A stretch of 64,000 bases of DNA from Oopsacas minuta (lineage: Eukaryota > Animalia > Porifera). The notes under the pieces were generated by a model that worked only from the letters and a program-made list of their open reading frames with translations, made no database searches and had not been told where the DNA came from. The stretch lies in contig JAKMXF010000031.1 in assembly GCA_024704765.1 (NCBI GenBank), positions 6,666 through 70,665 of the forward strand. The letters run 5' to 3'. Each line of letters starts with the position of its first letter. Position 1 is the stretch's first letter. Positions 31,801-58,909 of the stretch are shown here, in pieces. Position numbers and translations under genes: made by a program.

Positions 31801-33137
31801 NNNNNNNNNNNNNNNNNNNNNNNNNNNNNNNNNNNNNNNNNNNNNNNNNNNNNNNNNNNNNNNNNNNNNNNNNNNNNNNNNNNNNNNNNNNNNNNNNNNN
31901 NNNNNNNNNNNNNNNNNNNNNNNNNNNNNNNNNNNNNNNNNNNNNNNNNNNNNNNNNNNNNNNNNNNNNNNNNNNNNNNNNNNNNNNNNNNNNNNNNNNN
32001 NNNNNNNNNNNNNNNNNNNNNNNNNNNNNNNNNNNNNNNNNNNNNNNNNNNNNNNNNNNNNNNNNNNNNNNNNNNNNNNNNNNNNNNNNNNNNNNNNNNN
32101 NNNNNNNNNNNNNNNNNNNNNNNNNNNNNNNNNNNNNNNNNNNNNNNNNNNNNNNNNNNNNNNNNNNNNNNNNNNNNNNNNNNNNNNNNNNNNNNNNNNN
32201 NNNNNNNNNNNNNNNNNNNNNNNNNNNNNNNNNNNNNNNNNNNNNNNNNNNNNNNNNNNNNNNNNNNNNNNNNNNNNNNNNNNNNNNNNNNNNNNNNNNN
32301 NNNNNNNNNNNNNNNNNNNNNCTTCTACAGTAATACCATATGCAGAATTTCCGAAACATACCGTACACTGTTACTCTGCCGCGGACGGACGGAATGACTT
32401 AACACATCGTTAATGGCAAAAGGACATTTCCCTAGAAGCTGTACTAATTGTCATATACAGGAACCATGGAGATATTATAAGGGTTATTCGGAGCACTCGG
32501 CCCCTAAGGCTCCCTATATCAAATATTCATACGAATAAATCAGTAAATAGAGGAAAGACTGATAGCAATATTCTTTCCGATCACTGTTTATAAATGGTTG
32601 CTCTAGTTATGGCATAGGGAAAGATCCGAAATATAAATTCGTCAAAAATGGTACGCCAAGAGGAGCTACTAGATAATCCATAGTCCGGCACGGTTATTTT
32701 AGACTAAAGATATAAGATACATGGGGCATCCACCTCTAGAGAAGACATAGCGTTGGTAGAGAAAGCGATCGGGTTGTATAGTGTACACATATTTCTAAGT
32801 TAACTAACTTTGAGTATTTCAACTTTTTTCTCGTTTCGTGGCTCTCGACCCAATTCTTTCTGCTCAATAGAGCTTATTATTCTCCAGGATGTTCTCCTAC
32901 TACCGATCACATTCTTGTAGGCAACTGAGAGCAGATTCCTCTCTTCTGTCAACAGGACTTGTCCATGTTTGTGTTTCAGTTTGAGAAAGTCTTCCATTGA
33001 CTGAACCATTTCTAGATCGTATTCATAAATAATACCATAAAGATAACCAATAATGCTTACTTACCGTCATATCTCTCTGCTTGCTCAGCAAGTTTAGCAG
33101 CGAACACTTTAGGACTGAATTCCTTATTCTCAGACAT
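28824..33137 (-). CDS. 14-3-3 protein; visible exons 33137-33065, 33011-32809, 30535-30365, 30302-30106, 28858-28824; one internal exon missing, probably in the gap 31404-32321
   Basis: [67 protein letters not shown]; GT-AG sites in compatible phases. Confidence 0.9.
29278..29546. other. Assembly gap flanked by (ATGACAATA)n 9-bp tandem repeat
   Basis: Run of N with the same 9-mer on both sides; probably an unresolved minisatellite. Confidence 0.9.
30573..30980 (+). mobile_element. Non-autonomous Helitron-like repeat (second copy)
   Basis: A|TCTATATTATTAAATCTC start shared with 10179; GC-rich cgcgaagcgacgagtctaag near the approximate end. Confidence 0.55.
31404..32321. other. Assembly gap
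   Basis: Run of N. Confidence 1.
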
Positions 33138-35320: not shown

Positions 35321-35932
35321 TGTCAACTGAACCAAATTTATTATTAGTCTCATTTACTGAATGTATTTATACAAGTTATACGTTAATTATTCAGGTGTCA
35401 AGTGGTGAAATAGAAAGTTTCTGTAATATCGCAATACGTATTATTCTAGAACATTCCTCTCTGCTGCACTGATGACAGGATCATATTAGTTAGTATTTAT
35501 AATAACTCTTGGATTAGGCTTCAGAGTATTCTTAGATTATACCTGTAATTGTAGATTCATAAGATTCCCACTACTGATACATTATACTTTACTATTCCCT
35601 TGAATGTTATGTCATCTTCAGTTACCTAACAACCATAATACACAAGAGTTATTTAACTCTTCTCACCTGTCAGTCAATTTGTAATTTTGCGGAATGATTA
35701 TTTAATCCCAGATTTGTACTACCGTAATTATGAATATACAAAGAGTGAAATATGATAATTTAATTACTAACAAATATGTAAACACAACAATTGAATTAAT
35801 ATATATCTATTACACTATCAATAAAACTAGTACAAATAATATCAAAGTTATTATTAACAACTATTCCTCTAGGATGATTACATTTAATTTTGTGTATCAG
35901 CTGTCCATCTTTAGTAAATGGACAGCTGATAC

Positions 35933-36397
35933 TAGCTTAGAGAGACCTGCCCTCTCTTGGACAGCATTCATGGGGTTGAGTCTCAGGAGAGGCTGTAGTA
36001 TTCCCAGTTCTTGTTCGTAGTCCCTCTTTCCCAATGACAGAAGCATAGGAACTGTTTTGCATTGCAATCCGACTGCATTACTCACTGACTCTGGTAAACT
36101 ACTGCTCCACCTCTACCCACGCCTGAAGAGCCTCTGGAGATGATAACAGGAATTGTGTGTCCTCTCTTTCCACAAATGAGATTGAGGCCTGTAGTCTAGC
36201 TAGTCTCCCTTCTGGTGCCTCACACACTCCTAGAGAAGAGGGGATCTCTTTTGTATCCGGGGACTTAGTTTCCCTAAAGGAACTGACTATCCACCAGAGA
36301 GAGGATTTCCCCTTGAGTGATTTCTTGCGGGAGCGGGACATGTAGAGCTTGGGAGCTCCTGGCACCAATTCTGTCCTCTCAAAGAGGGACTCATCCA
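35933..36397 (-). pseudogene. Liprin-alpha-like SAM1 exon fragment (third copy)
   Basis: Direct homologue of 44570-45041; WVEVE...CKTVPMLLSLGKRDYEQELGILQPLLRL. Confidence 0.7.
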
Positions 36398-36549
36398 CTA
36401 TATGTCAGTTATCAGATATTGTGGTAGCGGTTATTTACAGTTGTGTTCGCCTAATAGCAATATTGCTCAATTTGTAAGTTACTTTTAGCCCCTAAGTGAG
36501 TATTTCTTGTATATTTTGTTCCTCTAATAGCAAGTTAGCTTATTAGTTA

Positions 36550-36730
36550 CCAAATTCCATTCAAAATGCGACTTCTTATTACTCAAACACCACTCCTTAT
36601 TTCAGAGGTAGCATTCTCTGGTAGACCTAGAGCTACCGCTTTTATAGCATAGCAATCCTCTGTTACTGTTCCTGTAGACTTCAAGTACTTCCAAACTTCT
36701 CAAATGCATCCACCTTCACAACCCATATAG
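36550..36730 (-). pseudogene. Papain-family (cathepsin B-like) exon fragment
   Basis: MGCEGGCI*EVWKYLKSTGTVTEDCY resembles GCxGG..AWxY..xGxVxxxCYPY; short and has stops. Confidence 0.35.
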
Positions 36731-36759
36731 TATATAGAATAAGATATTCACATACTTGC

Positions 36760-37860
36760 TGATTAGCCTCCCAAGATTCATGGATTATCACAGAATTTTC
36801 ATACAAATCAAAGGAAGAAATTGATTTTTCCAAATAATTGTTTCAAATTGCTATTTAAAGATGGAAACTTGGAAATACCGAAATTTAGCAAAGAGATTAT
36901 ACAAATAGGTTTGCCAGTGATTAACTGTCACATTTTGCTAGTTTGTATACTGCCTTCATCTCCCTATAATACTTCTGATTTCCTTCTAGAATCCTTAAAT
37001 TCAACGTCAACATACTAGACGAATGGAAACGATTGTTGTGCCAGGAGATTAATTATTGTTGTTTGATTTTGGACCATTTCAGGCAGTAACTGGAGTACGT
37101 TCCCAATAGATACCAAATTCTCTTTGATCTCTCAAAAGTTCTAACTTATCATCCTCTTTTGCAATAAGAATAGACTTTGTATCATTAATGTCAATGGACG
37201 TTACCAACTATGATGATGTCCTTTCCTACTAACTGCTGGTACTTCACCATCAAATGGGACTGAAGGACTAATTGGCATTTCACTACTTTCGACCAGGATA
37301 AAAGGAAGTGGAGATATTGTATGGGCAATACGATTTAGTGCTAGAATTCTCATGTTTCACTCATCTACTGAGTCTATTCCCTGTCTCACAGTAGAGACTG
37401 TACCTAGTATATTCTTGTTGGCTAGGCCTATGCCCACCATAGCTTGTTCCCTCTCCCATCTGCATTTTTCCAACAGCAGCTCCTTCATTACTACGTAGCA
37501 CTTTTCTATACGGCCCTGCACACAATTTCTCTATCTCTATCCTGTAGCAATTGGTGTGAAGGATCCAGTGATGAGATAGCTCAGAATCAATAGTTCTGAG
37601 CTCTTCGTGCTCTTTGAAGCCATCCAATCCTAAGTCTGTCTGTACAAACTGGTTAGCAGAGGGAGTGAAGGTAGGATGTTGAATGGAAGAGGAACTAGGT
37701 GGATCTTGCAGCTTCTGTACCTTCAATGATGGATAGTAAGAACTGGTCGGAGCACTACCCGAGGCGCTTGATTTGGGTGTGGTGTAGGGTTGGGAGGGAG
37801 ACTCGGGAGTATCTGAGTCTGAATATTTGCGTTTACGAGTTGATTTGAGACTAGTGTTGC
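36760..37860 (-). pseudogene. Degraded coding sequence of an unidentified protein
   Basis: Long protein-like frames (HHWILHTNCY..., ILALNRIAHTISPLPFILVE, EFGIYWERTP) broken by stops and frameshifts; family not recognised. Confidence 0.45.
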
Positions 37861-37893
37861 TAGGGGTGGGGGTAACGTCATGTGATGCATTAA

Positions 37894-37980
37894 GTTCTCC
37901 TCACACCAGTCTAAAGTAGATGTGGTATAGCCCCAGTGTCCCTTGATGTGGTATTTATCCGTCCATACATTAGGAGCCAT
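37894..37980 (-). pseudogene. Alkaline ceramidase (ACER3-like) N-terminal fragment
   Basis: MAPNVWTDKYHIKGHWGYTTSTLDWCEEN matches the family motif WGxxTSTLDWCEEN, then similarity stops abruptly. Confidence 0.8.
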
Positions 37981-38388
37981 TATTAGGAATCCTAGATCTA
38001 AACAAGGAGATAAAAATAAAAAAATAGTTAATGAAGGGAATGAAGAACTATAGGTGCTATAGTACACTAGTAAACAAAAATAAAACATAAATAAGATTAC
38101 ATGCAATGTAGAGATGTCAACAAATGAAATGCTATAATATATAGGAATTAGTTAGTGATAGAATGCTAAACTAACCAATAAATAAGAATCTGCTGTATTG
38201 AACCTGAACCTACGGAGTCCACTAAGTGATGATTAAAGTAATCTTGTGGTAAGTATAAGTTAATCGGGTCAAAACGGAGCTTCGAAGTTACAAATCAAGA
38301 AAACTGTTGAAAGGATTTAATAGACTATAGAGTATTAAGAAAAGGAAATAATCTGTGTAAGATAGAAATAATGGAAATAATCAATATA

Positions 38389-38577
38389 CTAATGTTCAGG
38401 TACGGGAATTTTTGAGTTGTCTGTGATTATCATATTGCTTATACCATTCTTTTTGATGTAATTAGCTTTCTGACCCTCCCCTCCAGTCATGTGTATTTCC
38501 TGTATATGTATAGCAGCATATATCATCTCCTGCATGTCTAACACCTTATAAAGTTCGGTATGGACTCCTCCTCCTGA
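38389..38577 (-). other. Orphan terminal-exon-like ORF ending in a copy of the TRAF 3' flank
   Basis: Polypyrimidine-CAG acceptor before GGGVHTELYK...; 38341-38401 matches 2760-2817. Confidence 0.3.
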
Positions 38578-39563
38578 AAACATAAACAAAATAATAACGA
38601 ATATAATTGTAACGAAAATAAACTATACCATCAGCTGCGCGACAGCTTAGTGCCTCAGGTTAGAAAACAATAAATTCATATATGATTAATCCAAAAGTGT
38701 AAAAATCGAATACAGCATATGCGTTATAATTAGAACGTCATGATGACGTAATAATTCCATGATAAGTTAGCTTTTGGTCAGAATCATGACATCAGGACAT
38801 GTGGCACCTTGAGGAGTACCTCTGTTTCAAAAATTTCAAACTTCTATCAACTATATTTGCTGAGCAGTGTTGAATAATGTGATTTTTGAAAATCAAAAAG
38901 GTGACAATTAACTCACAGTTTTGGTCATAGGTCTGAATTTTCCTTCAAATACTCGAAATGGTCCGAGGCAGGACCAAAGTACCCCCCCTGTATACCAAAA
39001 ATCAGCCCTCGAGGTTCTCCAGGTTTTTCAATCAATTCTGGACATACTAACATATATATGCACACTACCCTGTGTAGCCGTTTAGAGCAAGCCTGTATTT
39101 ACATTTTGAAATTTGGCCAATTTGTTTACTTTATATTCATAAAAACAACAATATGATTTCTCTTCGTAAGATCATCTGTTGTATGTTGCTAATGGTATCA
39201 GAAACACAAAGAATATTCCATTATTTCCTAATTAGTTATGATTTCTAGTCTATTGTGTAAACATTTAGATATTAAGCGTATCAAACAATACAAATACTTT
39301 TTCAAGTCAATTGAAGGATAATATTCGTAGAATCAATCTAGATACAACATTCATACATTCTAGCAAACCATAAAACATATCTTTGAAATATCAAAATATT
39401 GTTACTTAGTAAACCATAACATTAAAATTCAAATCTTGTATAAGATTAACCTTGCTCAGTTTAGCAGCGCCAAATACTCAATTTGGACGGTAACGACAGA
39501 TAAAGGTTGAGAAACGCTGGAGGGTTTATCTCACTATTTGAATGACCATTTAATAAACAGAAC

Positions 39564-40432
39564 TTACCGCTTCGCTAGTGAAGTGGGTGGGCTGTCACCG
39601 GGATGCTTCCGCTTGCGGCAAGCGCGATCCGTTGGCGGTGGAGGAGGAGGAGGAGTTGGAATCGGGATCTAGTAAAGAAAATAAAATAAAACTCGTCCGT
39701 AATAGGATGTATACATTCACACATTCTGGTGTACTCACTCTTGGTGGTGGAGCAGTAGTTGCTAGATAGAACAAAAGTTGTACTCGAAGGGAGTCGCATA
39801 CCATTCGAGACCTATCTAGTTCCTCCTTCAATACTTTCTCACATTTTAATAGAGCTTGCTTCTCATCCTCCAGTTGTTTCCTCCTAGTCTCCTCCATTTG
39901 AGCATTATTCTCTATTTGCTTCTTCAAATTGTGATTAGCTCTAGTGAGTTTCTTGATCTGATCACGTAGATAACTTGTTAGTTTATCATTCTCTACCTGT
40001 AACATCTTATATAATATTTCAAACATTGAATAATTGGAGAACAATTGTACTGGAGTTTCATGCAAATTAATAATTGGAGAAATTCCTATTTACAATTTGT
40101 ATATTATTCCTATTTAAGTCACATTGAAGTGTCTTAAACTATTTTAATTATTCTTAGACAATTCGTTAGTGGATTTTGGGAAAATTTTAACGCAGAATAT
40201 AATGAAGGGATTATCAATGATCAGTAAGATAGATGAAACTAACTTTCTTAGAATCTTCAATTGGGATAATTTTCTGAGTTTCATCCGTTCTTACCAACGT
40301 TCTACTGTTTATGATCTTTGGTTAAGTCAGCTTATCCACTCCCTCTTTCTCCTTCTCCTTCTCCTTCTTCTCGAAGAATTCTTTCAATAGCTCTTCTTTC
40401 TCACAGTCAATAGCAAGCTTTATTTCGGGCAT
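39564..40432 (-). pseudogene. Left-arm copy of the 3-exon coiled-coil/Pro-rich gene
   Basis: Same splice sites as 62996-63864 but AAA>TAA in exon 1 (KLT*). Confidence 0.65.
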
Positions 40433-41746
40433 TTTCGTTCCTCACGTAGAATGTGTTTTAATTATTCAGGAAAACAAGACAATAGTTCAATAAAAATAGG
40501 GAAGAAATAGAAATTAATAAAAATTAGATAATTTTTAATAAATTATAAATGAGAATTTCCAAACTTATGGGTGTATAAAAATTGAAATTATCATAGATTG
40601 TGAATATGCGAAGTATTTGGAAAATTGATATTATCCATTGGCTATGTACGGTATCGGCTCCTCTAAATGTATCAATTTTTCTTTTCACTTCTTTTATACC
40701 TATATTTACCCACATATGATGAAAACTGGAACTTATACGTCTTGCCGTTGGTTTGATATTAAACATAGTATTACGATTTGGGAGCATATCTAATTGAAGA
40801 GCATTGACGAAATGTCGGAGCATAAAGAAAGAAATATTTCGAATATTAAAATTGAATCAAAGAAATTGTAATGTTCTAAACTTGAATGGATAAAGTTACT
40901 AATCATATTTATTACTTTGATTGGTGAGAAGACCGCTGACAGGCTAATGGCAGTTCAAAGAGAGTTTGAAGTATCTCAAGGATCGGATTTCTTTGGAGTG
41001 GAATAATTAAAATTTACAGTGAATAATACAAACTCTATGAACAACAAATACACATGCAATGTGATTATAACTATCCTATTTTATCATATCGTTTGAAAAT
41101 GCCAAAAATGGAAAGAAAAATTGATAAACACCCATTCAAATGTACAAACCACTGTTTCTCAATATTCTTTGGGCCAAATAGCTCCCTTAAACACTTCCGG
41201 TGGGCGAAGAAACGCCCCCAGCGTGAGAAAACTGGTATAAACCAATAAATACCAAGTTAGAGTATTAAATGATATAATTAGTTCAACAACAGCAGAATCC
41301 ATAGAAATAACTAATACAAAATAAATAGCAATGATTGTATCTATTGTATCAGTACGGAGATTAGAAATATACAATTCAAAATATTACAAAGCTTTAGAGA
41401 AATAAGTTTAGTGCAAAATACAAATAATATACAAATGAGGGCTGACCTATAGCTATCGGATATTTACATAGTTTCAAGCAAAATACACTCCTTTGAGAAT
41501 CTCATCGTGTATCTGTACTAGTTTAAACAGGTTTAAAGTTCTCCGCTCATCGTTTGCAAACTCAATACTAATAAAGAGATATATTAATATATTTGCGAGA
41601 TAATAGTCACCATTAAAATGCATTGGGTATAACATTTGTAACACTTTCTCAGAGATGAACCAAGATTTCTCATAAATAATTAGAATAATTCCGAGTTCAA
41701 CAACTTTATATGAATATGCTAAGGTTGAATATTATGAATAACTTAC

Positions 41747-43192
41747 CCATGTTCATCTCTCTCCATCAAATGGTATCTAGCTCTGAAAGCAACTAATGCG
41801 CGTAATAAGCAGGAGCTGGAATAGATACAGATCTGGTACACCCTACATATGTATGAAATAATTGGTAAGTAAGAGATTGTATCTCATCAGCTGTAAAGTT
41901 GTTCTCATCCCATAATACGTGGCAATGAGATGGATGAGATGTTCTCTATAAGAACAATATTCAATTGAATTATTGGTTGAATATACATTGATCGAAGGTC
42001 TAATAGAAACAGTAGGACAGCGGTCCCAAACATTTTCACCCGTGGACTCATATACCATTTTAACACATGCTGTGGACCTCTTCACAGAAACCACTGAGAT
42101 CCTGTGGGCCCTTGTTGTCATCTGACCCGCGGCATTAAGAATTTCTAGCAATCAAAATCAATAAGATCGCTAAAACATAATCCAACCATATAACTTAATA
42201 CAAAACTTATATACGTATTACAAAATATGTGTAAAATAGCTCCAAAAATAAGAACTTACAAATATTTACATATAACGCTAGTGTATCCATAAATGAAGCA
42301 AATTATAATCTACAAATTGCAACTACAGATGCCATAAATAATTAATATTACTTTCCTATATACATACCTGAATACCTGAATGACTACACAGATAGAAATC
42401 AATTCTGTTGGATGAGTAATACCTACATCTACTGTAGTACCAGCTGGGATGTTACCAGATTTACCACATTGATCTTCCTCCTCTGAACAGAACAGATGGT
42501 GTGGTGTCTCTTCTGGACTGTAACGAATGTAATGCCAGGCTTGTAGTCAGCTTCTAAGATATTACCAAAGATTCTCTTACGGCTCTCCATTCTTGATTCA
42601 ATACCTGTGACGTAAATAGACTCATTACATTATAACTATCATACCTTCAACCCTCTCAGAATCTTGCAATTCACAAGAAATTTGGGAAAGATTTGCAATT
42701 TTCGTACCTGATTCCCCAAATAATCGCCCAAAATGCTTTTCATGAAGAATTTTGAAAATCCGGGAAATGATTATAGAGGTTGATAAGAATGTAAAATATA
42801 AAAGTAGTTGAATTGAATACTGAACATATTTAGTTTGCATCTTTGGATATCCCAAAAGATATTACAGTCAGTATTCCATCCAGAAATATTGGCAAGGGGG
42901 AGAAGTACCTAGGGTCCAATCAAATATTCCATTGTTATTGTATATAGTATATTCTTATAGTTAAACTGCGATAACAACATAGCATGACTGTACTGACCTG
43001 TTGAACTTGTCCTTCACTGACTCCATCCCGAAAGAATATAATCCTCTGAGGCTTAAACCTGGCAGATTTGTAGAATTAAATCAATAGATCTCGGACCATA
43101 GCAGCTAACTCTGTTATTATCTCTTGTCTGTGTTGCTGTACAAGGACTGAAGCACTGTAAGGACTAGGATGAGCGTCCATACTTTCAACTAA
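41747..43192 (-). pseudogene. Argonaute (AGO clade) PIWI-domain fragment, three exons: 43192-42998, 42604-42368, 41945-41747
   Basis: [76 protein letters not shown]; GT-AG sites retained; stops and frameshifts. Confidence 0.93.
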
Positions 43193-43299
43193 CTAACAAT
43201 ACAAGAAAGAGTGTAAATAGCGAATTGAAATGTTATAACGGGTATTCGGACTCAGCCACTTCTGACTTGTTGAATATTGGAGAGAATAATACAGGTAGC

Positions 43300-43650
43300 A
43301 GTGGATACCGGTAGTAGTGGATACCGGTAACAATGGATACTGGTCGCAGTGGATACAGGTAACAGTGGATACAGGTAGCAGTGGATACTGGTAACACTGG
43401 ATACTGATAGCAGTGGATACAGGTAACAGTGGATACTGGTAGCAGTGGATACAGGTAACAGTGGATACTGGTAGCAGTGGATACAGGTAACAATGGAAAC
43501 AGGTAGCAGTGGATACTGATAGCAGTGGATACAGTTAACAGTGGATACTGGTAGCAGTGGATACAGGTAACAATGGAAACAGGTAGCAGTGGATACTGGT
43601 AACACTGGATACTGATAGCAGTGGATACAGGTAACAGTGGATACAGGTAC
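43300..43650 (+). repeat. 16-bp minisatellite, about 22 units (agtggatac + aggtaac/tggtagc variants)
   Basis: Direct reading; variant unit aatggaaac recurs 80 bp apart. Confidence 0.95.
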
Positions 43651-43940
43651 CAGGGGCATCTATTGTATGCTAGTTATAAGAACCATGGATATGCACTAAT
43701 TGAATAATGATGTCCGCCACAATGCTACACATGTTCTCACCTATACACGATTTGTAAAGACGGAAACTAAGAAAGCAAAGTTAGGGAAAAATACAAATAA
43801 AATGTTTGTATTTAGCAAAGTAGTATTCAACAAATCACTTCATTTATATATACAAAAGCTAGCAATATAATTTGACAGGGTTAGTCTTATCGCAGTCTTA
43901 TCGCCCCTCCTAGGGCTAAGGAGTATGGGAGTCGGGATTC

Positions 43941-45041
43941 TCAGGCTCTTGAAGACATTCTTGGACTCACTGCGTCGCTTTTCCGCCTGAATAGAGCAAA
44001 GTTCCTCTTCTTTGCTTTCTTGTCAGAATTCGAAGAATCCTGTTGAGACATTAAATCGTCAAGTAACGCCTTACGTAGTTTCCTAGCAACCGAATCATTC
44101 TGAGGAATTTGTAGAGTACTAACAATTTTATGATAATCATATGAGTTATCAAAATATAGGACAGCTCCGTGTGAGACCTCTAAACTCAATGTTACCACTG
44201 TAACCACCCAGACCAATGGAATGTAACCATAAGGAAATCTGTCCATTGGACCTAAGGGTAGATCTGTCCTGTCTGTGAATGATTGTCTCTGCTTGTTTTA
44301 TAGAATATTCCTCTCATTGTTGTTGGAACTCTTAACCATTCCTAAACTAGTCCTTAGTTCCTTCTTGGACAGATGTTCTAGCACCCTTCCGTCTACACAG
44401 CATTGTCTAGAAATAATAGGAAGGTAAATAACAACAAATACACGTGTTAACTAACGAGTAAATAACAACAAACCTGAAAATATTGCTGTACTGAGTTAGA
44501 CCTAGTGAAGGCAGCCAATGAGAAGCTATCCATTCGTGGTTAACAGCCCTGTAGGTGGGGTAGAGACAAGGGGTACTAGCTTAGAGAGACCTGCCCTATC
44601 TTGGACAGCATTCATGGGGTTGAGTCTCAGGAGAGGCTGTAGTATTCCCAGTTCTTGTTCGTAGTCCCTCTTTCCCATTGACAGGAGCATAGGAACTATT
44701 TTGCATTGCAAACTGACTGCATCTCCCACTGACTGCGGTAAACTACTGCTCCACCTCTACCCACGCCTGAAGAGCCCAGGAGACCATACACAGGAATTGT
44801 GTGTTCTCTCTTTCCACAAATGAGATTGAGGCCTGTAGTCTAGCTAGTCACCCTTCTGGCGCCTCACACACACCTACAGAAGAGGGGATCTCTTTTGTAT
44901 CCGGGGACTTAGTTTCCCTAAAGGAACTGACTATCCGTCGGATAGAGCATTTCCTCTTGAGTGATTTCTTGCGGAAGCGGGACATGTAGAGCTTGGGAGC
45001 TACTGGCTCCAATTCTGTCCTCTCAAAGAGGGACTCATCCA
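43941..45041 (-). pseudogene. Liprin-alpha-like triple-SAM C-terminal region (two exons)
   Basis: NHEWIASHWLPSLGL, VDGRVLEHLSKKELR, HGAVLYFDNSYDY...LQIPQND; frameshifted. Confidence 0.8.
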
Positions 45042-45354
45042 CTATATGTCAGTTATCAGATATTGTGGTAGCGGGTATTTACAGTTGTGTTCGCCTAATA
45101 GCAATATTGCTCAATTTGTAAGTTACTTTTAGCCCCTAAGTGAGTATTTCTTGTATATTTTGTTCCTCTAATAGCAAGTTAGCTTATTAGCTTTCAAATT
45201 CCATTCAAAATGCGACTTCTTATTACTCAAACACCACAGATAATGCATATTGATTAAACTGTGCTTTATAGTGTATTCAAACAATATACTAAAGTAGTAT
45301 TACGAATGGAAATATCAAAGAGTTCAAATGTTCATTGAAATTTTTGTGATCGGG

Positions 45355-45669
45355 TTATCGGTCCTGTAGATTGCTTAGGTGTTTGTGTGATTTGGAATTT
45401 ACATTTCTACAACAATCAGGCATTGGTACAATATTCTTGGAGCGGATAGATCCTTGCCTAATTAAAGCATCTAAATTATCTTTCCCTTCAACCATCACCA
45501 TGTACCTCTCAACTCTCCCAACAGAATTGTGTTTTCCCAATTTCAATTTGGTTCTCTTGGGAGTCTTTGGAGGAGATGAAAAGGTAACCTCCTTAATACT
45601 ATAATTCCGAAACTTCCCTTTCCCTCTGAGCGAAGACGTAAATGCTCTCATCCCAGTTTCCTTTCCCAA
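45355..45669 (-). pseudogene. 3' half of the ORF at 58014-58619
   Basis: Near-identical peptide RTFTSSLRGKGKFRNY...; 5' half absent in this arm. Confidence 0.6.
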
Positions 45670-46355
45670 TTAACTTCCAGAAAGCGGAAGCATGCTTGTG
45701 ACACCCCCCCCCACTCACCAACAAAGCACTCCATGTGTCTACGTCCCTATATATTGTCGTTGAGAGCCAGTTTCCTTTCGATTACATGTATATTAAGATA
45801 AATATCCCGAAAAGACAACAAACTTCTATTTGTAAATTAGTATTATATTGTAAATACCAATTCTGCTAACGTCATCACTAAATCCCGCCTAAACAACTCA
45901 ACCACAAATTTATGAACCTCAACGATGTCACAAAGGATCCCCGTACCCAATAAATGATTCTGGTTGAAACCTGAAACCGTACTTGTAGCTACGGTCCTGT
46001 AGTTTAATAAGTATAGTTTGTCTATAAATGCCAAATACACACTGGCCTTCTCGAGAACATATCTGCCGTATAGTAAGTAGGCTATTGTATCTTCCTCTAG
46101 CGAAGTTAAGATCAAAAATAAGAGAGGGAAGTTTCTAAGCGGGGATAGTTGAATACTAGCGCAACGCTTGCTAGTACGCTGTACGACAGCTTAATGCTTC
46201 GCGTTAACCTATGTATTGATTAAACAGCTAAAGCTTATAGAGTTATTGGTCGCGTAGCGACCAATAACTCGAGCCAATAATATACCCATCTGACTTAGCC
46301 CATGATATACTCATTATTACGCAATCAACAGAATAGTGAAATGTAAGTAATCAAT

Positions 46356-46694
46356 TCAGTGATAATTGGGATACAGCTGTTTATAGTCCTTTATGTGATT
46401 TTCTCTTGTATCCTGGCTACAACAACCTGTAGCAATCAGGCGTTGAGCCATTTCCCTAACCCGCAAATCATTCAGGCTCCTAAACTCCCTGATACTTGTA
46501 TCACTTACAACCCGCCGATGTAGCAGCTGTCTCATCCTCAACAGTTTCTGGCGTCTTCTAACTGCTAACATGCGCCTTCTCTCAGCCTCTCTGCGCATTC
46601 GTGTTATGGCTCGAAACCGACGCTGTATTAGTATAATCGGCATAATCCTGGGTGAGTTCTGTGCCAATAATTGTCCAGAAGGAATAGGGGCCAT
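46356..46694 (-). CDS. Arg-rich small protein of unknown function, 112 aa
   Basis: ATG-initiated ORF, open in both arms (partner 56360-56734). Confidence 0.4.
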   Translation of the reverse strand: MAPIPSGQLLAQNSPRIMPIILIQRRFRAITRMRREAERRRMLAVRRRQKLLRMRQLLHRRVVSDTSIREFRSLNDLRVREMAQRLIATGCCSQDTRENHIKDYKQLYPNYH

Positions 46695-47308
46695 CTTTTT
46701 GTCAAAGTACAGTCAATTCAATAATATCTAATTCAGCAATAACTAATCACATAAAACCATATATTAAATAGTACTTAGCCCATGCGCTACTAGCATACTA
46801 TAGGCAGATGAAACTAAAGTGAACTACTGACACGTGTTGATATGTAATTTGGCTTCTGGGTCAGATATTTTTTAAGTGCTGGACCACACAGTGGGCTATA
46901 ATTGCGAATTATTAGTATTAGGGTTTACGCGTTCAATTTTAGAGATAGGTTTATAAAATACATTATTACTGTATAGTAAGTCGACTATTGTGGTTCTTTT
47001 GTTGATTTCAATTTTGTTCTATCACATCAGGTTTTCAATATATGACGTAATCTTAATTACCATATACAGTAATACAGAAATCTAGATATACACTGAACTG
47101 AGAATTATTAAAAGAAATAGAATATGAATATATTATGGCTATGGTAACTGAAGAATAACTAACATACGAATATCTTACTGATGAATTAATTTATTTAACT
47201 GCTGGACCAGTTTGCATTATATTCAAATATTTGTGCGTCACTTATATTATTTCACTTCTTTGAGTGCCTAAGTTTTATCCGAATTGTTCCACTTTTTTCT
47301 AAATAGCC

Positions 47309-49154
47309 ATGCCTAGAATGACAAATGCGAATGCTCGGGAGAAGCTTTCTTCCACTCTAAAGCAGTTCCGTTCCATTACGGGAGAGAGTATTGGGGTCGT
47401 ATTTACGTGGAGAGGAAAGTTAGCTACAATGGGGACTGAGAATTTCCAAAATTTGATCCATTCTCTGAAGAATGAATTTTGTGGGTCAATAGTTGGTTCA
47501 CATCGTGAGACAGACACTGAGAAGTTCAATCAAGACAAAGAAATCATCGATCAGTTAGATGGAGATTTAGAGAGCTACAGTGTCCCAACGCTTCGAAGAC
47601 TAGTGTCATGGATCACTAAACGCTCAGTTGGTGAGTTTATTTTATTGACAGATATGAATACTTGACTAAGCGATTATGTGTGAATATTCTAGATTATGTT
47701 AAGCCAAACTTATCCTGAATTGCTGACACAACGATGATACATTTTAGACATTCGTTTGAATTCTATGCGAAGATACCATTCTTCATACTCGCCTTAGCTT
47801 AATGCTGTGATTAAACATTACATTTTAGGAAAGAATGTGTCCTTCTGGAATGACGCATCTCTTGTACCTTCATTCTGGCCGAGAGATGTGGAATATAAGA
47901 ATATTAAACATTCCAACAAAAAGACTCTATGTCGGATTATTCGAGGTTATAGGAGGAATGACAACCTAGAGGAACCTGTTAATGGCGTCCGAGACAGATC
48001 TCCCCATATTAGCCCTCAGAAGACTCCTCGCGTTGTTCCCAAGAAATTTAAGAAAAGTCCCGAGAAGAAAAATAAATTCGAACACCATCCAGTTATGACA
48101 CCGATCACTTCTCTTCCACATTCCTCTTCCTATATTCCAGTTTCTGATGTCGACTCTAGTTATAGTGAAGGTTTCCTTCCAGGGTTCCGACAGTTTGAAC
48201 ACTCAACTGATGATGTAATTGTTCCTACTACTACACCTAGTTTAGTATCTCAGTTAGGTATAACACCTTTGCAACCCATCTTTGAATTTTCACCGATACT
48301 TAACCAGAAGGACCGAGATCAATCATTGTTAGAATTGTCCACTAAGAATACATTCCTCACTGACACGTGTATGAACACCTTTTCTGTAAGTTAAAATGTG
48401 ATAAATACAAGTTAATTGCGTTCAATTTTCACATATTCATAGGAACTCCTGAAGAATGTGTATCCTCATGTGCAGGGTCTCCGGGACACGATTCTCTCTA
48501 AGGTGTTATATAGGTGCCATGCTTACTATGTACGAGTTTTGTAACACGAATTATTTTAATGTATCTTCTTTAGAACAGACAATTTGTCAGAGCTCCTCGT
48601 CCCAGCATGCAAATTCACCATGATGGAGGACTCCATTGGGTATGTTCCAGTGTCGATGTTGAGGGCAATGTTACGGTGTATGATTCCCTGGCAACTGATA
48701 GAACGAGTGAGGAGCTGGATATACAACTGGCTCTGCTATATGGACGTAGTGCTGGTAAGATGACAGTAACATTTGCCCCTATTCAACAACAGAGGTGGTG
48801 CGGACTGCAGATTATTCGCGGCAGCAGTTTGTCTTGCAATAGCGAACGGTGATGATCCACAACATATTCGCTGGAAGCAAAATAGGATGAGATCGTACCT
48901 CAGTGATTGCTTCAAAACTGAGACTTGATAGCAAGCAGTTATGGACTAAGATACTCACTTCTTCCAGGTCAGAATTTAAGATTGAGTTGAGGTGTCTCTG
49001 TAACCTGCCAGAATTTGCCTCGAGTAACATGATTGAGTGCTCGAAATGTCGCCAGTGGTTTCATAAACCATGTGTAGGACTAATCGATGACAGCAATGAT
49101 GTTGAGTGTTTTTCCTGTCCTCAATGCAGCCCTCATCGATCTTCATTACCATAA
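47309..49154 (+). pseudogene. NRF1/Ewg-like DNA-binding domain + Ulp1-like (C48) peptidase + PHD finger; exons 47309-47630, 47829-48385, 48443-48502, 48574-~49154
   Basis: In-frame GT-AG joins; KLSSTLKQF..TG, TLRRLVSW..K.SVG....W.....PSFWPRDV; QIHH...HWV...VYDSL, QQQ/GGADC; CLC...MIECSKCRQWFHKPCV..CPQC; frameshift ~48790 and stops ~48925. Confidence 0.72.
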
Positions 49155-49272
49155 TAAATCCAATATCAGTATGTACTCATTATCCCATTTAGTAAGGACA
49201 CACATACACTCTAGTGCAATTATGATCTCATTGATCTCTATGTATTACAAAAATACTCACTACATGTATATA

Positions 49273-51995
49273 CTATTTGCCTAATGTTTTGGGCTTATTG
49301 CTTATGTTATTAAGACACGCTAGGAAATATCTTGTGGTGTAAAAGACGTTTTCAAGACGCATGTATGCGATCTGAGTGGCAATTCTTCGAAGTGAAGAGA
49401 ACAACTGTTCACAAACTTGTGAATTAATTTTCTTCATCTCTTCTGTTTTAATATTTCTCAATGAGTAGGATGAACTACACTTGTGATTTGTTGAATGAAA
49501 TCTATCGATGAGAAAAGTTGTATCCATAAATACCTTGGGATCTCTATAAAGAACAAAATGCGAATCATGATACTCCTATAACAAACGGTGCATTATTCCT
49601 AATTATATTCGTAGAACAATTTCGAATCTGCGAACTCAAAACGTATGTAATATACCTTTTCATGCAAGTCTTGTGTAAGTTGCAAGCGTTATCATAGATA
49701 ATAACCTTTGGCTGTACTTTGAACAATTATCCGCCAGCTCAACACTTTCATTCTGGTAAATTGGTATCCTAAGAAGTATTAAATAGTTTTAGCTGAACTA
49801 TGACAGAATGAAATTACTTACTTGTAGTGTTTAGTGAAAGCTGGGAAGTAGTTGTAGTGCTCATCACTTTTGGGACAGAATTCAACTATTTTTTGAGAAG
49901 GTTTTCTGGACAAACCATCAATTTGGATGAATATTCTCTTCAGCAGTGAGGCAATCATTGGATGTAACGTAACGTTTCCATCTATGTCTACTGATGTATG
50001 TATTGAATTGATCAGGTATTCAAGTGTGTGCATTTTAGTGTATATAATGTTTAGGGTTTCTTCATTGGCTGATCCTCCCTGAGACAGATGTACTAAAGCT
50101 TTCTCTCTTGTGAATTCAGTAGAGATAATTGAACAATCCTGTCATCGCGTCAGTACGACAAAGAAGCTGTATACTCTTTCTAGTTCTCTCATATCCTTCG
50201 GTTATTGACACCCAATGATATAATTAGAAGAATTGAAGATTATGTAAGCACAAAATTCCTTGTTATTCAATTTTTCTAGCAATTCATCAAATCTATCCTC
50301 TTGAAGGCCTTGCAAACTATACTCTAAGAGTGCATTTCGAAGATCTACATCATGAATGAATACCCTCTCAGATGTATCAATCATGGGATACTTCTGCTCG
50401 TAATCAACTGCTTCTTCCACTTCAGGTAAGGATCTCATTATTCCCATGGCAATTCCATCTATAACAACTATTTTAGGCTCCAGCTTGCACTGAGAGCAAG
50501 TGTAGTGTGACGAATAATCGAGGTCAACCAATCTCAAATACGAGTTCCAAGCAAGATGTACTACGTGATACTTGAAGCTACCTTTTCTTCCCATTCGTTG
50601 CAGTTTCTGATTTTTGGCACTATTAAAATTGAGAATTTCGCCATTATGTAATATGAGAATTTGACCCAAGTTTTATAATATACTAACCTCAAGTACCCAT
50701 ATGGAGTGTTCCTTGACATCGTCATGAGTTCACTGTAATCGCATAATAGGCTGTAATGAATGAAGTATTTGTTGTTAACATTCAGTAGTAACATATTCTG
50801 TCCTTCGTAAACAGCTTGACACTTGCAAGAGCCATCACAGATAGAGCTGTACACTACAAAATGCATATGATTTGGATAATAAAATATAATTTTTCCTGTA
50901 ACGCTTTAGCAATAAATGTAGGTACGTACTACCTTTGTTTTGGTTGAGTCTAATCACGTCATTTTTTGTGTATATAACAATTCCAGTGTTTTCTAGTTTA
51001 AGCTGGTCTTCTCTGTTGAATTCGTAGCCGTTCTTACAGTACTTTTGTTCAGGAATCAACATTTTTGGTAACTGGATACCTTCACGAAGCTGCTGGTCGT
51101 AACTTGAACTAAGCGCTTCATCAAGAATAAATGGAATTGGAGCAGAGGTCACTACATTGTATTCAATCTTTCGTTGACTTTTTATTGAAGGTTGATCAGT
51201 CATTGCGAGGATATTTTGGAGCTTTGTTTGTTGCTTACATTTCCCGAGACAAGAATTACAGGAGCAACCACCAATAGTTCTCAAGGTAAAGTTATGAAGG
51301 GTGTCAAGCACTAGGATAGATATATTCGTTGGACTGATTAAGTAATACATCATCTCTTCAAACACATTGGCCTCACAAACTTTCAAGCACATAATCTGTG
51401 AACATTGGACGAATGCTTGATAGTGAAGACAATAATCATTGTTACAACAAGAGCAAACTTGAAGATTAGTATCAATGACGAGGCTCGTTTTCTTGAAACC
51501 CAGTTTTCCTACAGATGTGATATGCAATATAATTATTAATAAACAGAATTGTCTTTGCTAATATGCTCTCCTACAGCATTAAACAATTAACTGGGTTGTA
51601 AACAAATTTCATACCAATTGTAATAACAAATACCTTGTGAATGTTCGTAATCTGGTATTATGGTGTATTTACTGTTCTCTAATAGGAACAGTTTAGATTC
51701 CTCTACTAAGATCCTAAACATACTGATCTAAAGTAGATAGTTTAATATCACTGACTTCTGCGAAGTACTCATCATGAACACGATAACCTAGGACATTGGT
51801 AACAAGAGATATAATTATAGAACTTAAATAGACAATACCTTGTGATACATTGAATTCTGCATTGATTAGCGGATCTTCGGATAGAATTACGTTATTAACA
51901 TCATCAGTCAGAGAAAGAATAGTGTCTTCTTCAGTCTTTCGCTTCTTTTTGTTACAATTGAGCGATATCGTTGAGTAGATTATGTTATCTGCCAT
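49273..51995 (-). pseudogene. KDZ-family (HMGXB3/Zisupton-like) transposase, multi-exon, degraded
   Basis: SWIM-like CSCC..YCLH, CxC region, YTCSQCKLEPKIVVIDG, PKVIIYDNACNLH, FLIDRFHSTNHKC, INSQVCEQLFSSL; stops and frameshifts. Confidence 0.82.
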
Positions 51996-52312
51996 TAACT
52001 CAGCCGGAAGTTTTACTTAGGAATTACAATAGCTATTTATACAGAAGTAACCTTTCAAAGAAATTCCAATTGCCATTGTGGTTACATGGTTGCGCATATG
52101 ACAACTGGTATGATTTGTGGTTAAAATTATCTAATCTTCAAAACCACTATGTATATACTCTACACCCCACTATTTATTATATATGTGCATGGGTACTAGT
52201 AGCGCATGCGCTAGGTACTTTTTAATACCTCCCGTACAAATTCTTGGAGGGGGTAGATCCTTGCCTAATTACAGTATGTAAATTATCATCCCATCACAAA
52301 TTAAAGGAACAG

Positions 52313-52398: not shown

Positions 52399-52431
52399 GA
52401 GTATTTATTGTATTGATATCGTAATGTAGTA

Positions 52432-54552
52432 CAGTAAACATTGGATTTAATGACACTCGTTTGGGCAGGCAAAAAAGGTCGCTATATCCGATTTGTCGCT
52501 ATATCCGAGGAAGCTTTATATATGCATTATATACCGGATGACACCCATATTTATTCGTGTTATACGATGTAGTATACTATGTTGTTGTATTATCGTCATA
52601 ATAATGTCATGAATATGATTAGTTTGACTTGAAAAAGCTAGTTATTGAGGCCTGCTGCAATCGACTCAGCTGACTTTCAGCCAAGAAGTTTTGAAGTTCG
52701 CTGACAGACTGAATCTGTTTCTCTGAGCATGGGAGGGTGCGCAAGAACTTCATAACGGTGTCAAGGCATGAGACAACAGTGTCGAATTACGGAACATGGA
52801 TATTGGGGGGATATTCATTGTCGTCATTTTCGATATCAACATCGTCATCACTTGGAGGGTGCAGACTATTAAGGATATCGTCAATTTCGAGACCATTTGC
52901 ACCAGGTCCAATTGCAACACCATCATCCAGAGCAACAAAGTCCTCAAATGATAAGCCATCCGAAACAAGCCCTGCTTCTTCAGCACTGCTCCAAATTGAT
53001 GTGTCAGGTGCTGAGGTTTCTTCAGTGGCAGGTAAATCCTTGAACCCAACATGCTGATAGCAATGCTTGATGGTTGTGGGGGTGACATTATCCCAGGACA
53101 TTTTTAGCCAGTCCAAGGCCTGGAGCAAGTCAAGCTTGAACCCCGTTTCAGAATCAACTGCCAATAAACGCTTCCTAACAAGAAACCGGCGGTAGTGGTG
53201 CTTGAGGTTCTTGATTATACCTGCGTCCATGGGCTGAGTCATAGACGCTGTGTTGGGTGGGAGAAAGAAAAGCTTGATATGGGACAAGTTAAGGTTCGGA
53301 TGACCTGAGAAGTTGTCAAGAATCATGGCGATTTTCCTGTCGTCAAATCTCATAGAATTGTTCAACTTCCTTAGCCATTTCTCAAAAATCTCACTTGTCA
53401 TCCATGCGGTTCGATTGGCATCATACTCCACTGGAAGATTCAGGACGCCTCGGAAACAGTGGGGGCGCTTACTCTTTCCAATAACGAGTTGCGGAAACCT
53501 CTCCCCAAGCGCACTAGCTGCTACCAATACAGTGAGGCGTTCCTTGGAGCGCTTGCCTCCTTTGCACAAGTCTCCTCGGAAAGACAAAGTTCTGTCTGGT
53601 GTCATCTTCCAGAATAGCCCAGTCTCATCAGCATTGAAAATATCCTTGTCTTCAAACTCTTCTCTGATCAGTTTCAGCTGCGTTGATATCCAGTTGTCAG
53701 CACCAGCGTGATCTGCTGATTGGCTCTCACCCGAGATTTGACGGCTGGTGATGTTATGGCGCTTCTTCCAACGATCTATCCAGTTCAGATCAAGGAACAC
53801 AGGTTCGAGGTAGCCAGGCACATTTCGTACTTTCAGTTTCTCCGCGATGCATATCGCCTTTTCTAGAAGAAAGGGACAGGTGACTGACTCATCTGGAGCT
53901 GTGCTCTTCAAACAACGAAACCACTCAAGCAGTGCAGTGTCGATCTCCGGGTATCGAGACAGCTTTGTGCTCTTCGAATCAAGATTTGATGCACTTGCGA
54001 TGGAAGTTTCAATCATCGCCCGATCTTTCAAGAAGCCGGCTAGGGTCCCATGTGAAATGCCATGTTTCTGCTCCAAGAATGGTCGCTTAGCTCCTGCATC
54101 AAGCTCCTTCAAAATTTTGTATTTTTCAGCAAAAGAAAAGCGCTTCCTTTTGCCAAGTCCGCTCGAATCCATGACGATTAAATTTTAACATTACATTGTA
54201 CGTACAATAGCTTTTAATAAGCGTTTTCGTAAAAAGCCAGGTGCTGTTGATTCAATAGGAGATTTAATTGTTTTATAATTTAAATCAATTATTAAACCCT
54301 TAATAATTCACTAATTAGTACACTTTTCTTAAGTCCACAGTATAGACAACCCAAAAGTCGTAATATCCAATTGGATTTGCATAGAGCAGGCATAGAAAAT
54401 ATGTCGCTAAATTCAATGTGTCGTTATCTGACAGGTCGTTATACCCGAGGTATGGTGTGTGCAGAATAATGCTGCGAGATTCTGGCAAGCAAAATGAGTC
54501 GTTATAAGCGATTTGTCGTTAAAGCCGATGTCGTTAAATCCAATGTTTACTG
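52432..54552 (-). mobile_element. Full-length Tigger/pogo DNA transposon (2121 bp)
   Basis: TIR cagtaaacattggatttaatgaca / tgtcgttaaatccaatgtttactg with TA on both sides; encloses an intact transposase. Confidence 0.93.
52787..54172 (-). CDS. Tigger/pogo transposase (CENP-B HTH + DDE_1), 461 aa
   Basis: Uninterrupted ORF; WIDRWKKRH, FNADETGLFW, ILDNFSGH, QPMDAGII (DD-D triad). Confidence 0.95.
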   Translation of the reverse strand: MDSSGLGKRKRFSFAEKYKILKELDAGAKRPFLEQKHGISHGTLAGFLKDRAMIETSIASASNLDSKSTKLSRYPEIDTALLEWFRCLKSTAPDESVTCPFLLEKAICIAEKLKVRNVPGYLEPVFLDLNWIDRWKKRHNITSRQISGESQSADHAGADNWISTQLKLIREEFEDKDIFNADETGLFWKMTPDRTLSFRGDLCKGGKRSKERLTVLVAASALGERFPQLVIGKSKRPHCFRGVLNLPVEYDANRTAWMTSEIFEKWLRKLNNSMRFDDRKIAMILDNFSGHPNLNLSHIKLFFLPPNTASMTQPMDAGIIKNLKHHYRRFLVRKRLLAVDSETGFKLDLLQALDWLKMSWDNVTPTTIKHCYQHVGFKDLPATEETSAPDTSIWSSAEEAGLVSDGLSFEDFVALDDGVAIGPGANGLEIDDILNSLHPPSDDDVDIENDDNEYPPNIHVP

Positions 54553-54554
54553 TA

Positions 54555-55080
54555 TTACGAATATTACTATCAAATAGTTCAAGTGTTCATTTAATTCTAC
54601 GTGAACGAGTTATCGGTACTTACAAACTATTCAATAGAACTCGCGAAAGTTCGTGAAGTATTCCAACTCTATGGCTCGGAAGAATTCTGTTCCCATTTAA
54701 CACTAGGTCTAACTGAAAATGCGAACGAGTCCTTACACAATGTCATTTGGAACTTCTGTCCAAAGGCAAATACCTTTCTCCTCAAAGTGTGCGTATTAGC
54801 ACTGCAATTTTGCTGTAACAATCTTCAATGAAGGAGAACTAAGCATTTTCGGATTTATGCGGGAGCTGAAACTTTGTCCTTCGTATACTTCATTCCGGTC
54901 TGTTGTCAAAAGGGAACATGTAAAGGAACAACACCGAACCTACATTCGGAAGGCAAATGTTCATAGGGGAGCAAGACGTCTAAACTAAACAAGGCTCCGG
55001 CGAGAAACAGGACTTCTCCGAAAGAAAGGTGGACCCAGCTATAAATCTAGCGCTTTAGGATCTGAGACCCGGTGAAAACC
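54555..55080 (+). pseudogene. C-terminal remnant of a Mutator-like (TQNxNES-type) DDE transposase
   Basis: GLTENANESLHNVIWNFCPK, then frameshifted FNEGELSIFGFMREL. Confidence 0.65.
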
Positions 55081-56359
55081 TACAAGAACACCCTGTTCAC
55101 GTGCAAGAACTAGAAGAACTTCCAGGACAAGAATATCTTCCAAAGGGAAGAAAGTCTGTCAGACGATCCCAAATTCTTTTACCTCAAATTCAGAATCTGA
55201 CTTTTCAATAAAAGACAGCGGTAGTGAAGTTAGTCATGTGATTCTTTGTGATATATGCCTCCTTACACACCCTCCGACACAAAGACAACAAGTTATTTCA
55301 ATTTGCTCCAGGGTGAAGTGGCTCACATGCATATCCTGTAAGAAATCATTCCACCAGAGATGCACAGAACTTGACAGGGGAGCTGTATCTAATTCTTCGG
55401 GGAATACACAGTGATAAACCAAATATTGGCATTTTATTTTTTTGGCCGCATGACGGAAATATTCCTGAATTTTGGTTTTTCACTTGATAATCTCCACGAC
55501 ATACTCATGTTTATCATGGAGTTATCACACCTTATGATTTGCTCAAAACATTAGGTGGTGTATTAAGCGATTGGCAGCTTAAGGAGTATTGAGATATTCT
55601 TATCCTATGTGTTAATACAGAACTTTAACCCTATTGAGATATCTTTTGATTTATCGATCGTAATTGGTTTATATGACTTTACAAGAGGAGAAACTTTGTT
55701 TATAATCTTTATGATTGTATTTTTGAAAATTGGTAATTCTATGTGACTACAGGCCGCCTATACCTGTAACATTGTATATATTTTTTCTAGGACTTTTCCC
55801 AGTGGTAATTTAATAATATTTTAGTAATGAATAATTCATTCCACTGCAATAGTTTAGTAGAATAAGGGGTTAGCAGGCTAAAGTCAAAAATACATACTTT
55901 GAATTTTATTTGCAGTTTTCAGTAGGGTCCGGACAAAGTTATCAATTTCTTGATTTTATACAAGGATTAATCAATCAATCAGTAATTATTCTTCAAATGA
56001 TTAGCAATGCTACAATACTTTAAGTTGATATACAATCACTCTCTGAAAGTTTGAAGTCATTGTGACATATACTTCATCATGGAAAAGTCGTTAAATTTTG
56101 ATAAAGTTAGTTTTGAGAAAATCATGTTTGAAGTTAAAATATTGCTTTATTTGAAATTCGATGCTTTGTCGGGTTTTAAAAGCTATTATTATTGATTGCG
56201 ACACATTTGAGATTACGGTTGTAACAATTCCACCACTGATGCATGAATGACATATCTTTCTACTCATAATACTAACGTATTCACATCAATATGGGTTTTA
56301 TGTGATTAGTTATTGCTGAATTAGATATTATTGAATTTGACTGTTCTCTGAACAAAAAG

Positions 56360-58619: not shown

Positions 58620-58909
58620 ACATTTGAACTCTTTGATATTTCCATTCGTAATACTACTTTAGTATATTGTTTGAATACACTATAAAGCACAGTGTAATCA
58701 ATATGCATTATCTGTGGTGTTTGAGTAATAAGAAGTCGCATTTTGAATGGAATTTGCTAACTAATAAGCTAACTTGCTATTAGAGGAACAAAATATACAA
58801 GAAATACTCACTTAGGGGCTACAAGTAACTTACAAATTGAGCAATATTGCTATTAGGCGAACACTACTGTAAATAACCGCTACCACAATATCTGATAACT
58901 GACATATAG

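Follow-up and report, generated by a model that had tools for sequence, protein, structure and literature searches.

The two Argonaute (AGO) gene fragments that face each other in the last 64 kb of contig JAKMXF010000031.1 of the glass sponge Oopsacas minuta (assembly GCA_024704765.1) are most likely non-functional passengers in a multi-copy mosaic of gene pieces spread by neutral segmental duplication, a reading to which we give a probability of roughly 0.7. The 64-kb stretch is referred to as the window; its position 64000 is the end of the contig, and adding 6665 to a window position gives the contig position (window 64000 corresponds to 70,665). The accession series of the O. minuta contigs was confirmed in PMC10280926. 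A preliminary description of the window had seen a transposon that captured AGO exons into its two arms. Instead, the arms belong to a mosaic of at least six copies in which AGO is one of at least five passengers, and the two transposons of the locus, of the KDZ and pogo types, are separate elements in the spacer. Copies of the mosaic unit, or cassette, in the left and right arm are called W_L and W_R, and a third window piece at 35930-36593 is called W_3. Outside the window, copies are present at L002 (contig 97, with L002a and L002b), L003 (contig 55) and L004 (contig 302), and a locus with an intact AGO gene, L005, lies on the 1.69-Mb eukaryotic contig ctg28095 of ENA assembly ERZ25069837.

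The cassette copies W_L, W_R, L002a, L002b, L003 and L004 are distributed over four contigs at identities of 84-98%, and the order and orientation of the gene fragments are the same in the window, L002 and L003 copies. Two of these loci, L002 and L003, were reached through two of the four Oopsacas paralogues of an annotated 193-aa open reading frame (ORF) in the right arm (58038-58616), and L004 was found by a search with the third AGO exon of the fragment. In the case of L002, the two copies are arranged in tandem with a period of 7.33-7.38 kb; L003 holds one cassette that is interrupted by a Tc3-like insertion, and L004 is a solitary 1.1-kb AGO piece that runs from intron 1 to intron 3 and is annotated as a 157-aa "argonaute-2". 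Multi-kilobase collinear blocks are thus shared by different contigs and include tandem units, an arrangement expected of segmental duplication.

The AGO part of the cassette consists of the last four exons (E1 to E4), with their introns, of an AGO-clade gene, and six-frame reading places it on the minus strand at 41474-43192 and on the plus strand at 60463-61977. Three such exons with introns, including the RDG and YYAH motifs, had been described in both arms, and these are confirmed; the exon count falls short by E4, which had been overlooked. In the left arm (minus strand), E1 (42998-43192) encodes the glutamate-finger stretch QQHRQEII and the RDG motif, and is interrupted by a TAA codon at 43078-43076 (LLI*FYK), with the piece after the stop giving a Pfam Piwi match of 1.3e-7. 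E2 (approximately 42368-42604) has one insertion (2 nt) and two deletions (1 nt each) that are private to this copy, and E3 (41746-41945) ends with YYAH followed by a 1-nt deletion that is common to the right arm only, and that shifts the frame by -1 into a 17-residue stretch before the GT donor. The last exon, E4 (41474-41567), ends in GVYFA and the natural stop codon, and matches the last exon of the L005 gene at 78% of nucleotides. In the right arm (plus strand), E1 (60463-60655) carries the same TAA stop in addition to a private stop (V*QHR) and two private 1-nt deletions; E2 (61050-61211) has a TGA codon in common with L002b and L003, and has lost its end to a 225-nt deletion (corresponding to left-arm 42218-42442). 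E3 (61506-61705) has the same 1-nt deletion behind YYAH, and E4 (61884-61977) is identified by alignment with the other copies and L005.

Protein searches with the AGO part were run exon by exon rather than with a spliced model, as was the majority call described below. Separate Pfam Piwi matches were obtained for E1, E2 and E3, the best being that of E3 (E=5e-20). Against solved structures (phmmer on PDB), E3 aligns with residues 759-810 of human AGO2 and AGO3 at about 85% identity with an E-value near 1e-22, as opposed to only about 1e-5 for PIWI-clade proteins, and on the strength of this difference the fragment can be assigned to the AGO clade and not the PIWI clade. No match to the E4 ORF was found by phmmer on PDB, and its identity comes instead from the nucleotide match to the last exon of L005. 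In tblastn comparisons with an 855-aa AGO query, matches in the window begin no earlier than residue 607, as opposed to residue 12 in L005; the N, PAZ and MID domains are therefore missing from the fragment, as is the first catalytic Asp. Given these missing residues, and a reading frame that is broken in both arms by the stop in E1 and by frameshifts in E2 and E3, a protein role for the AGO fragment is very unlikely, in agreement with the preliminary description, which had called it unlikely. A protein word search with a 121-aa ORF spanning AGO intron 2 and E3 gave no match, nor did exact look-ups of two further ORFs in the arms.

The order in which the lesions arose can be read from an alignment of the six copies. 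The TAA stop in E1 is common to W_L, W_R and L003, and its site is deleted in the remaining three copies. The 1-nt deletion behind YYAH is found in W_L and W_R only, with L002a, L002b and L004 reading YYAHLVAFR in frame. The E1 stop is thus older than the family, and the YYAH frameshift is private to the pair in the window. The earlier claims that both arms have the same stop and the same frameshift, and that inactivation of the AGO fragment preceded duplication of the arms, hold up in a base-by-base alignment, the second of them by virtue of the shared lesions. The TGA codon in E2 is present in W_R, L002b and L003, and is not found in W_L, L002a and L004. In addition, a conserved Tyr codon in the motif GTS.PSH(Y)H is retained by L004 alone (10866-11045) and is replaced by Cys in all other copies. 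With this Tyr kept and YYAH in frame, L004 may be the earliest-branching copy.

Subsequent losses differ from copy to copy. One third of E2 is missing from W_R, 43% of E1 from L002a, nearly all of E1 from L002b, all of E3 and E4 from L003, and all of E1 and most of E4 from L004; AGO parts have been lost at random, with no sign of preservation. In a majority call of the copies, E2, E3 and E4 are open to the natural stop codon, and the E1 stop is the sole lesion, which argues that the founder of the family was a young, nearly intact 3' fragment. Relationships among the copies are not constant along the unit. From AGO to the tail, the two arms are sisters (97.5% identity), as are L002a and L002b (98%), while across the borealin and liprin pieces W_R has L002b as its nearest relative (94.8%, compared to 93.1% for W_L), and W_3 is 98.5% identical to L002a. 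Such shifts indicate exchange between copies or a complex duplication history, and not one clean local fold-back.

In the window, the left cassette copy (39548-46762) has its sense strand on the minus strand, was identified by self-BLAST and repeat search, and is collinear with L002 and L003. The right copy (56289-63880, plus strand) is broken by another repeat at 63880, 120 nt short of the contig end. Self-comparison pairs left 39548-45665 with right 63880-58285 at 91-95% identity and left 46305-46762 with right 56750-56289 at 88%, and reveals W_3 as a direct third copy of 665 bp. The AGO parts of the two arms align at 95.8% identity and have eight internal indels, among them the 225-nt deletion of the right arm and another of 22 nt on the left side; they would pair in 24 perfect runs of at least 21 bp, the longest being 255 bp. 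Between-arm identity is 93.8% in E1, 96.4% in intron 1, 91.2% in E2 and 91.2% in intron 2. The AGO exons are no better kept than the introns, and there is no exon constraint between the arms. The cassettes are head-to-head, and their AGO parts are separated by 17-19 kb and two transposons.

Several other features of the arms can be noted. The last 144 nt of the window (63857-64000) are a repeat that is present twice in L003 (8214-8357 and 18412-18555, 95-97% identity); the contig thus breaks off within a repeat, and the right cassette may run on past the end of the assembly. At the inner ends of the arms, an Arg-rich ORF of 112 or 124 aa (46356-46694, minus strand; 56360-56734, plus strand) is open in both arms at 88% nucleotide identity, and also matches L002 9180-9349; it has no match in Pfam. 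At 56750-58285, the right arm has 1.5 kb where W_L, L002b and L003 have 0.64 kb, and, as the N-terminal part of the borealin-like ORF is complete in the longer version, this may be the older state of the two. A search of Rfam found no known RNA family in window positions 35-64 kb.

The complete cassette exceeds 10 kb and contains, in order, a borealin-like piece, liprin-alpha SAM exons, a 16-nt variable-number tandem repeat (VNTR), the AGO 3' exons, a tail, a ceramidase-like stretch and a cathepsin-B piece. The borealin-like fragment is at 58038-58616 in the right arm (plus strand), where it is 79% identical to a 234-aa O. minuta protein named "Borealin N-terminal domain-containing" in UniRef, and is a remnant at 45355-45669 in the left arm (minus strand). 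The liprin-alpha SAM-region fragment of the left arm (44526-45237, minus strand) matches Pfam SAM_1 and, among PDB entries, liprin-alpha-2 (E=1.6e-14), and its right-arm counterpart is at 58714-59542 (plus strand). Directly upstream of AGO, the VNTR abuts the intron before E1 and comprises about 23 or more units in the left arm (43225-43736) and a collapsed array of about 1.5 units in the right arm (60342-60366); the repeat is also present in the L002 and L003 copies. The unit continues beyond the left arm on the minus strand (35930-39670) with the tail, the ceramidase-like stretch, which has a weak match to Pfam Ceramidase, the cathepsin-B piece (36591-36728), which matches the cathepsin gene of L005, and the next liprin piece (35930-36593). 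From 39670 down to 35930, the window is collinear with L002 226-3705 at 96-98% identity, and since this collinearity reaches the next liprin piece, a second tandem unit starts behind the left arm. Elsewhere in the window, TRAF/MATH-like ORFs form a tandem pair of 83% identity (3046-3915 and 6519-7422), several short dispersed repeats are found at 7.4, 12.0-12.5, 24.5 and 26.4 kb, and an AT-rich stretch distant from the arms includes assembly gaps (runs of N) at 29278-29546 (269 nt) and 31404-32321 (918 nt).

The loop between the arms is occupied by a KDZ-type transposon with 32-nt terminal inverted repeats (TIRs) at 46762-52227, by a pogo/Tigger-type transposon with 30-nt TIRs at 52426-54558 (minus strand) that has an intact 461-aa DDE_1 ORF (52787-54172), and by about 1.9 kb of unique spacer. 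Both transposons are independent, TIR-bounded elements in the spacer and are not the owners of the arms. The homology of the left arm breaks off no more than about 4 nt from the left end of the KDZ element and does not resume on its far side, and no target-site duplication was seen at the ends of the element; this junction may be a rearrangement breakpoint mediated by the transposon end. A simple insertion of KDZ into a longer palindrome was rejected on the grounds that arm homology is absent beyond the element, and derivation of the cassette from KDZ was rejected because the KDZ ends are unlike the cassette borders. Another transposon-like terminus, a 17-mer, occurs as a single copy in the left cassette (45754-45770, plus strand). 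It recurs at L003 6306-6320, 9883-9899 and 16044-16060, and at L002 9864-9878, where it lies in L002b. At L003 16506-16545, a TTAA is flanked head-to-head by two termini, which together make up a perfect palindrome of 38 nt.

The functional gene from which the fragment was copied appears not to be L005. An exhaustive representative search with E3 retrieved only P0009, a pseudogene copy, and P0006, the intact AGO on the ENA contig. At L005 3900-13500, which comes from an assembly of metagenome type, an intact, intron-rich AGO-clade gene is followed by a cathepsin-B gene in the same orientation. Over the last four exons, the L005 gene and the fragment have the same exon boundaries, exon identities of 78-83% and unrelated introns. 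Between L005 and the family majority call, the proportion of synonymous differences (pS) is 0.69 and that of nonsynonymous differences (pN) 0.042, a ratio of 0.06, so that the differences are almost all synonymous. Since a truncated fragment cannot be selected for AGO function, this divergence arose between two functional genes. L005 was consequently rejected as donor on account of its pS, and is an orthologue or paralogue instead; a closer functional donor AGO presumably exists or existed in Oopsacas. A word search with the cathepsin neighbour of L005 found no Oopsacas protein, and for this reason L005 is probably from another organism, a relative of Oopsacas. Pieces of a cathepsin gene of the L005 type flank the cassette copies, which hints, as a lead only, that the mosaic may have begun as a copy of an AGO-cathepsin neighbourhood.

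The cassette might alternatively be the cargo of a non-autonomous DNA transposon of the Pack type, with its copies generated by transposition. This would account for the perfect 17-nt inverted pair (9883 and 16060) that encloses the cassette in L003, for the single occurrences of the same terminus in the left arm and L002b, and for the two termini that abut around TTAA. Furthermore, intron-bearing fragments of several genes in a single orientation are typical of Pack-MULE, Helitron and CACTA cargo. However, W_L, L002b and L003 share homology outside the 5' terminus as well, and the copied unit is thus larger than any TIR-bounded element. Homology between contigs also extends kilobases past the candidate ends (3.7 kb beyond their 3' side), the arrays are tandem, the window is without a second terminus, and no target-site duplication was found in the cassette copies examined. 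On the basis of the homologous flanks, the missing target-site duplications and the homology that runs kilobases past the terminus, segmental duplication is better supported than transposition as the copying mechanism, leaving the latter improbable; the transposon ends possibly served as breakpoints. Likewise, it is barely credible that the right arm is an assembly artefact, in the form of a mis-joined haplotype or a long-read fold-back chimera. Such chimeras can create false palindromes at contig ends, and the right arm does end 120 nt from one, but the arms differ by 2-12%, with about 23 versus 1.5 VNTR units, the 225-nt deletion, the 22-nt indel and a replaced segment of 1.5 versus 0.64 kb. 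Moreover, 9.5 kb of unique sequence with two transposons lies between them, and some of the right arm is more similar to a copy from another contig than to its left counterpart. Because the 9.5-kb loop is unique and the arms differ at many points, a palindrome caused by a missed adapter was rejected.

Small RNAs offer two further explanations. In the more elaborate of these, an anti-silencing hairpin, a transcript through both arms would be processed by Dicer into small interfering RNAs (siRNAs) that lower host AGO mRNA and thereby relieve the transposons of the locus. The arms are real, and their AGO parts pair in the long perfect runs described above. Between 54 and 62% of the exon 21-mers of each arm equal the founder sequence, so that a close parent could be hit, although this proxy is biased upward because both arms enter the majority call; against L005, a related intact AGO that is not the donor and the only intact one retrieved, the longest perfect match of the arms is a single run of 23 nt. 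Gene models have been placed on both cassettes, and the genome authors kept models of less than 100 aa only where RNA-seq coverage existed. A 91-aa Piwi model on L003 survived that filter, though reads derived from the parent could explain the coverage. Against the hairpin, complementarity spans the whole arm of more than 7 kb, including four other gene fragments, with no focus on AGO; the exons have diverged as much as the introns, and a deletion has cost the right arm 225 nt of E2 and its intron. The other four copies are tandem or solitary, none being inverted. With the cassettes head-to-head, read-through from the loop transposons, which do not own the arms, would be expected from the geometry to yield sense RNA on both sides, and a hairpin would need an outside transcript of more than 21 kb that crosses two transposons. 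The anti-silencing hairpin is thus physically possible yet unsupported, rather than refuted, and appears highly improbable. Little more can be said for the broader proposal that siRNAs from the inverted pair, or from antisense transcription of any copy, might act on the sponge's own Argonaute mRNA as a feedback loop or anti-silencing device, created when the mosaic was duplicated amid many transposons; this would be just as remote a prospect. Somewhat less improbable than either, and still unlikely, is an incidental source of small RNA, whereby the repeat-rich region would feed the siRNA or PIWI-interacting RNA (piRNA) pathway and AGO-matching RNAs would be unselected, with little or no effect on AGO. 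Inverted and multi-copy repeats beside active-looking transposons are the usual substrates of these pathways, as known from Drosophila hairpin RNA (hpRNA) loci, piRNA clusters and mouse oocyte pseudogene pairs, but the large distance between the AGO parts counts against such a source here. A literature search found no small-RNA study of Oopsacas.

Neutral segmental duplication of a dead fragment would account for the locus by the following sequence of events. DNA copied from a functional Oopsacas AGO, lacking the 5' part and comprising the last four exons with introns, would have been joined to liprin-alpha, borealin-like, cathepsin-B and ceramidase-like pieces, and the joined AGO fragment would then have gained one nonsense mutation. 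The unit of more than 10 kb would have been multiplied with its neighbours by segmental duplication, in tandem, dispersed and, in the window, once inverted. The inverted pair would initially have been spaced by about 1.9 kb, with the KDZ and pogo elements now filling the rest of the loop, and every copy would then have decayed on its own, so that any double-stranded RNA from the locus would be a by-product. The copy family, the order of lesions, the lack of exon conservation, the geometry and the near-intact founder are established from the sequences; that the copies arose by segmental duplication, and that no selected function exists, is our inference.

Several points weigh against this reading. 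The outer stretch of the arms, from AGO to the tail, is unusually alike (98-99%), which could reflect gene conversion, and could equally reflect constraint on pairing. The 17-nt inverted pair in L003 allows that part of the unit may have been moved by a transposon, and a small-RNA role of the arms, either as a by-product or selected, may exist. In addition, the sequence covered amounts to about 140 kb of a 61-Mb genome, so that both the number of copies and the proportion of inverted pairs are minimum values.

Arrangements with some of these properties are known from other systems. Endogenous siRNAs against a parent gene arise from Drosophila hpRNA loci and, reportedly (work of Tam and of Watanabe, both dated 2008), from pseudogene pairs in mouse oocytes. 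Like these, the Oopsacas locus contains a dead host-gene copy in two inverted arms that are complementary over long, near-perfect stretches. It differs in that complementarity extends over a 7-kb mosaic of unrelated fragments as a whole, the AGO parts are 17-19 kb apart, inverted pairs are absent among the other copies, the machinery of silencing would itself be the target, and the locus is known from DNA alone. As in Pack-MULEs and the cargo of Helitron and CACTA elements, the cassette is a chimeric, intron-bearing string of pieces from several genes, in one orientation and in multiple copies, and a TIR-like pair surrounds one copy; unlike them, its homology passes the termini, no target-site duplications were found, and it forms tandem arrays with periods of 7-10 kb. 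Mosaic segmental duplications, for instance those of primate pericentromeric regions, and macrosatellite-like tandem arrays of pseudogene fragments similarly consist of multi-kilobase collinear blocks of gene fragments, which in Oopsacas have 88-98% identity and lie on several contigs, in tandem, dispersed and inverted arrangements, with copy-specific deletions and signs of exchange between copies. In O. minuta, by contrast, the genome is compact (61 Mb), and at one site or more the breakpoints fall on DNA-transposon ends. Finally, Mu killer of maize is an inverted partial duplication of a transposon that silences that transposon. The Oopsacas locus likewise holds part of a gene in inverted duplicate and could give rise to a hairpin RNA, but Mu killer silences a transposon, and the idea for O. 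minuta would be the reverse, with the silencer being silenced.

In practical terms, the dead copies are of use chiefly as a caution for annotation. Deposited protein-coding models lie on them at window positions 59258-61169 (plus strand) and 42787-44246 (minus strand), at L002 3588-6328 and 12019-13388, at L003 11570-12600 and at L004 10001-11524. They include a chimeric SAM and Piwi protein of 265 aa, Piwi proteins of 368, 417, 233 and 91 aa, and the 157-aa "Protein argonaute-2". These models are likely annotation artefacts, and such models could inflate Argonaute counts in O. minuta. As it stands, the locus is an ordinary decaying pseudogene fragment, and the family to which it belongs is a natural record of how segmental duplication and transposons have reshaped the compact genome of an early animal, using pieces of at least five host genes. 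If it were true that small RNAs from the AGO part act on a functional Argonaute, this would be a striking case of a genomic locus aimed at the silencing machinery in an early-branching animal.

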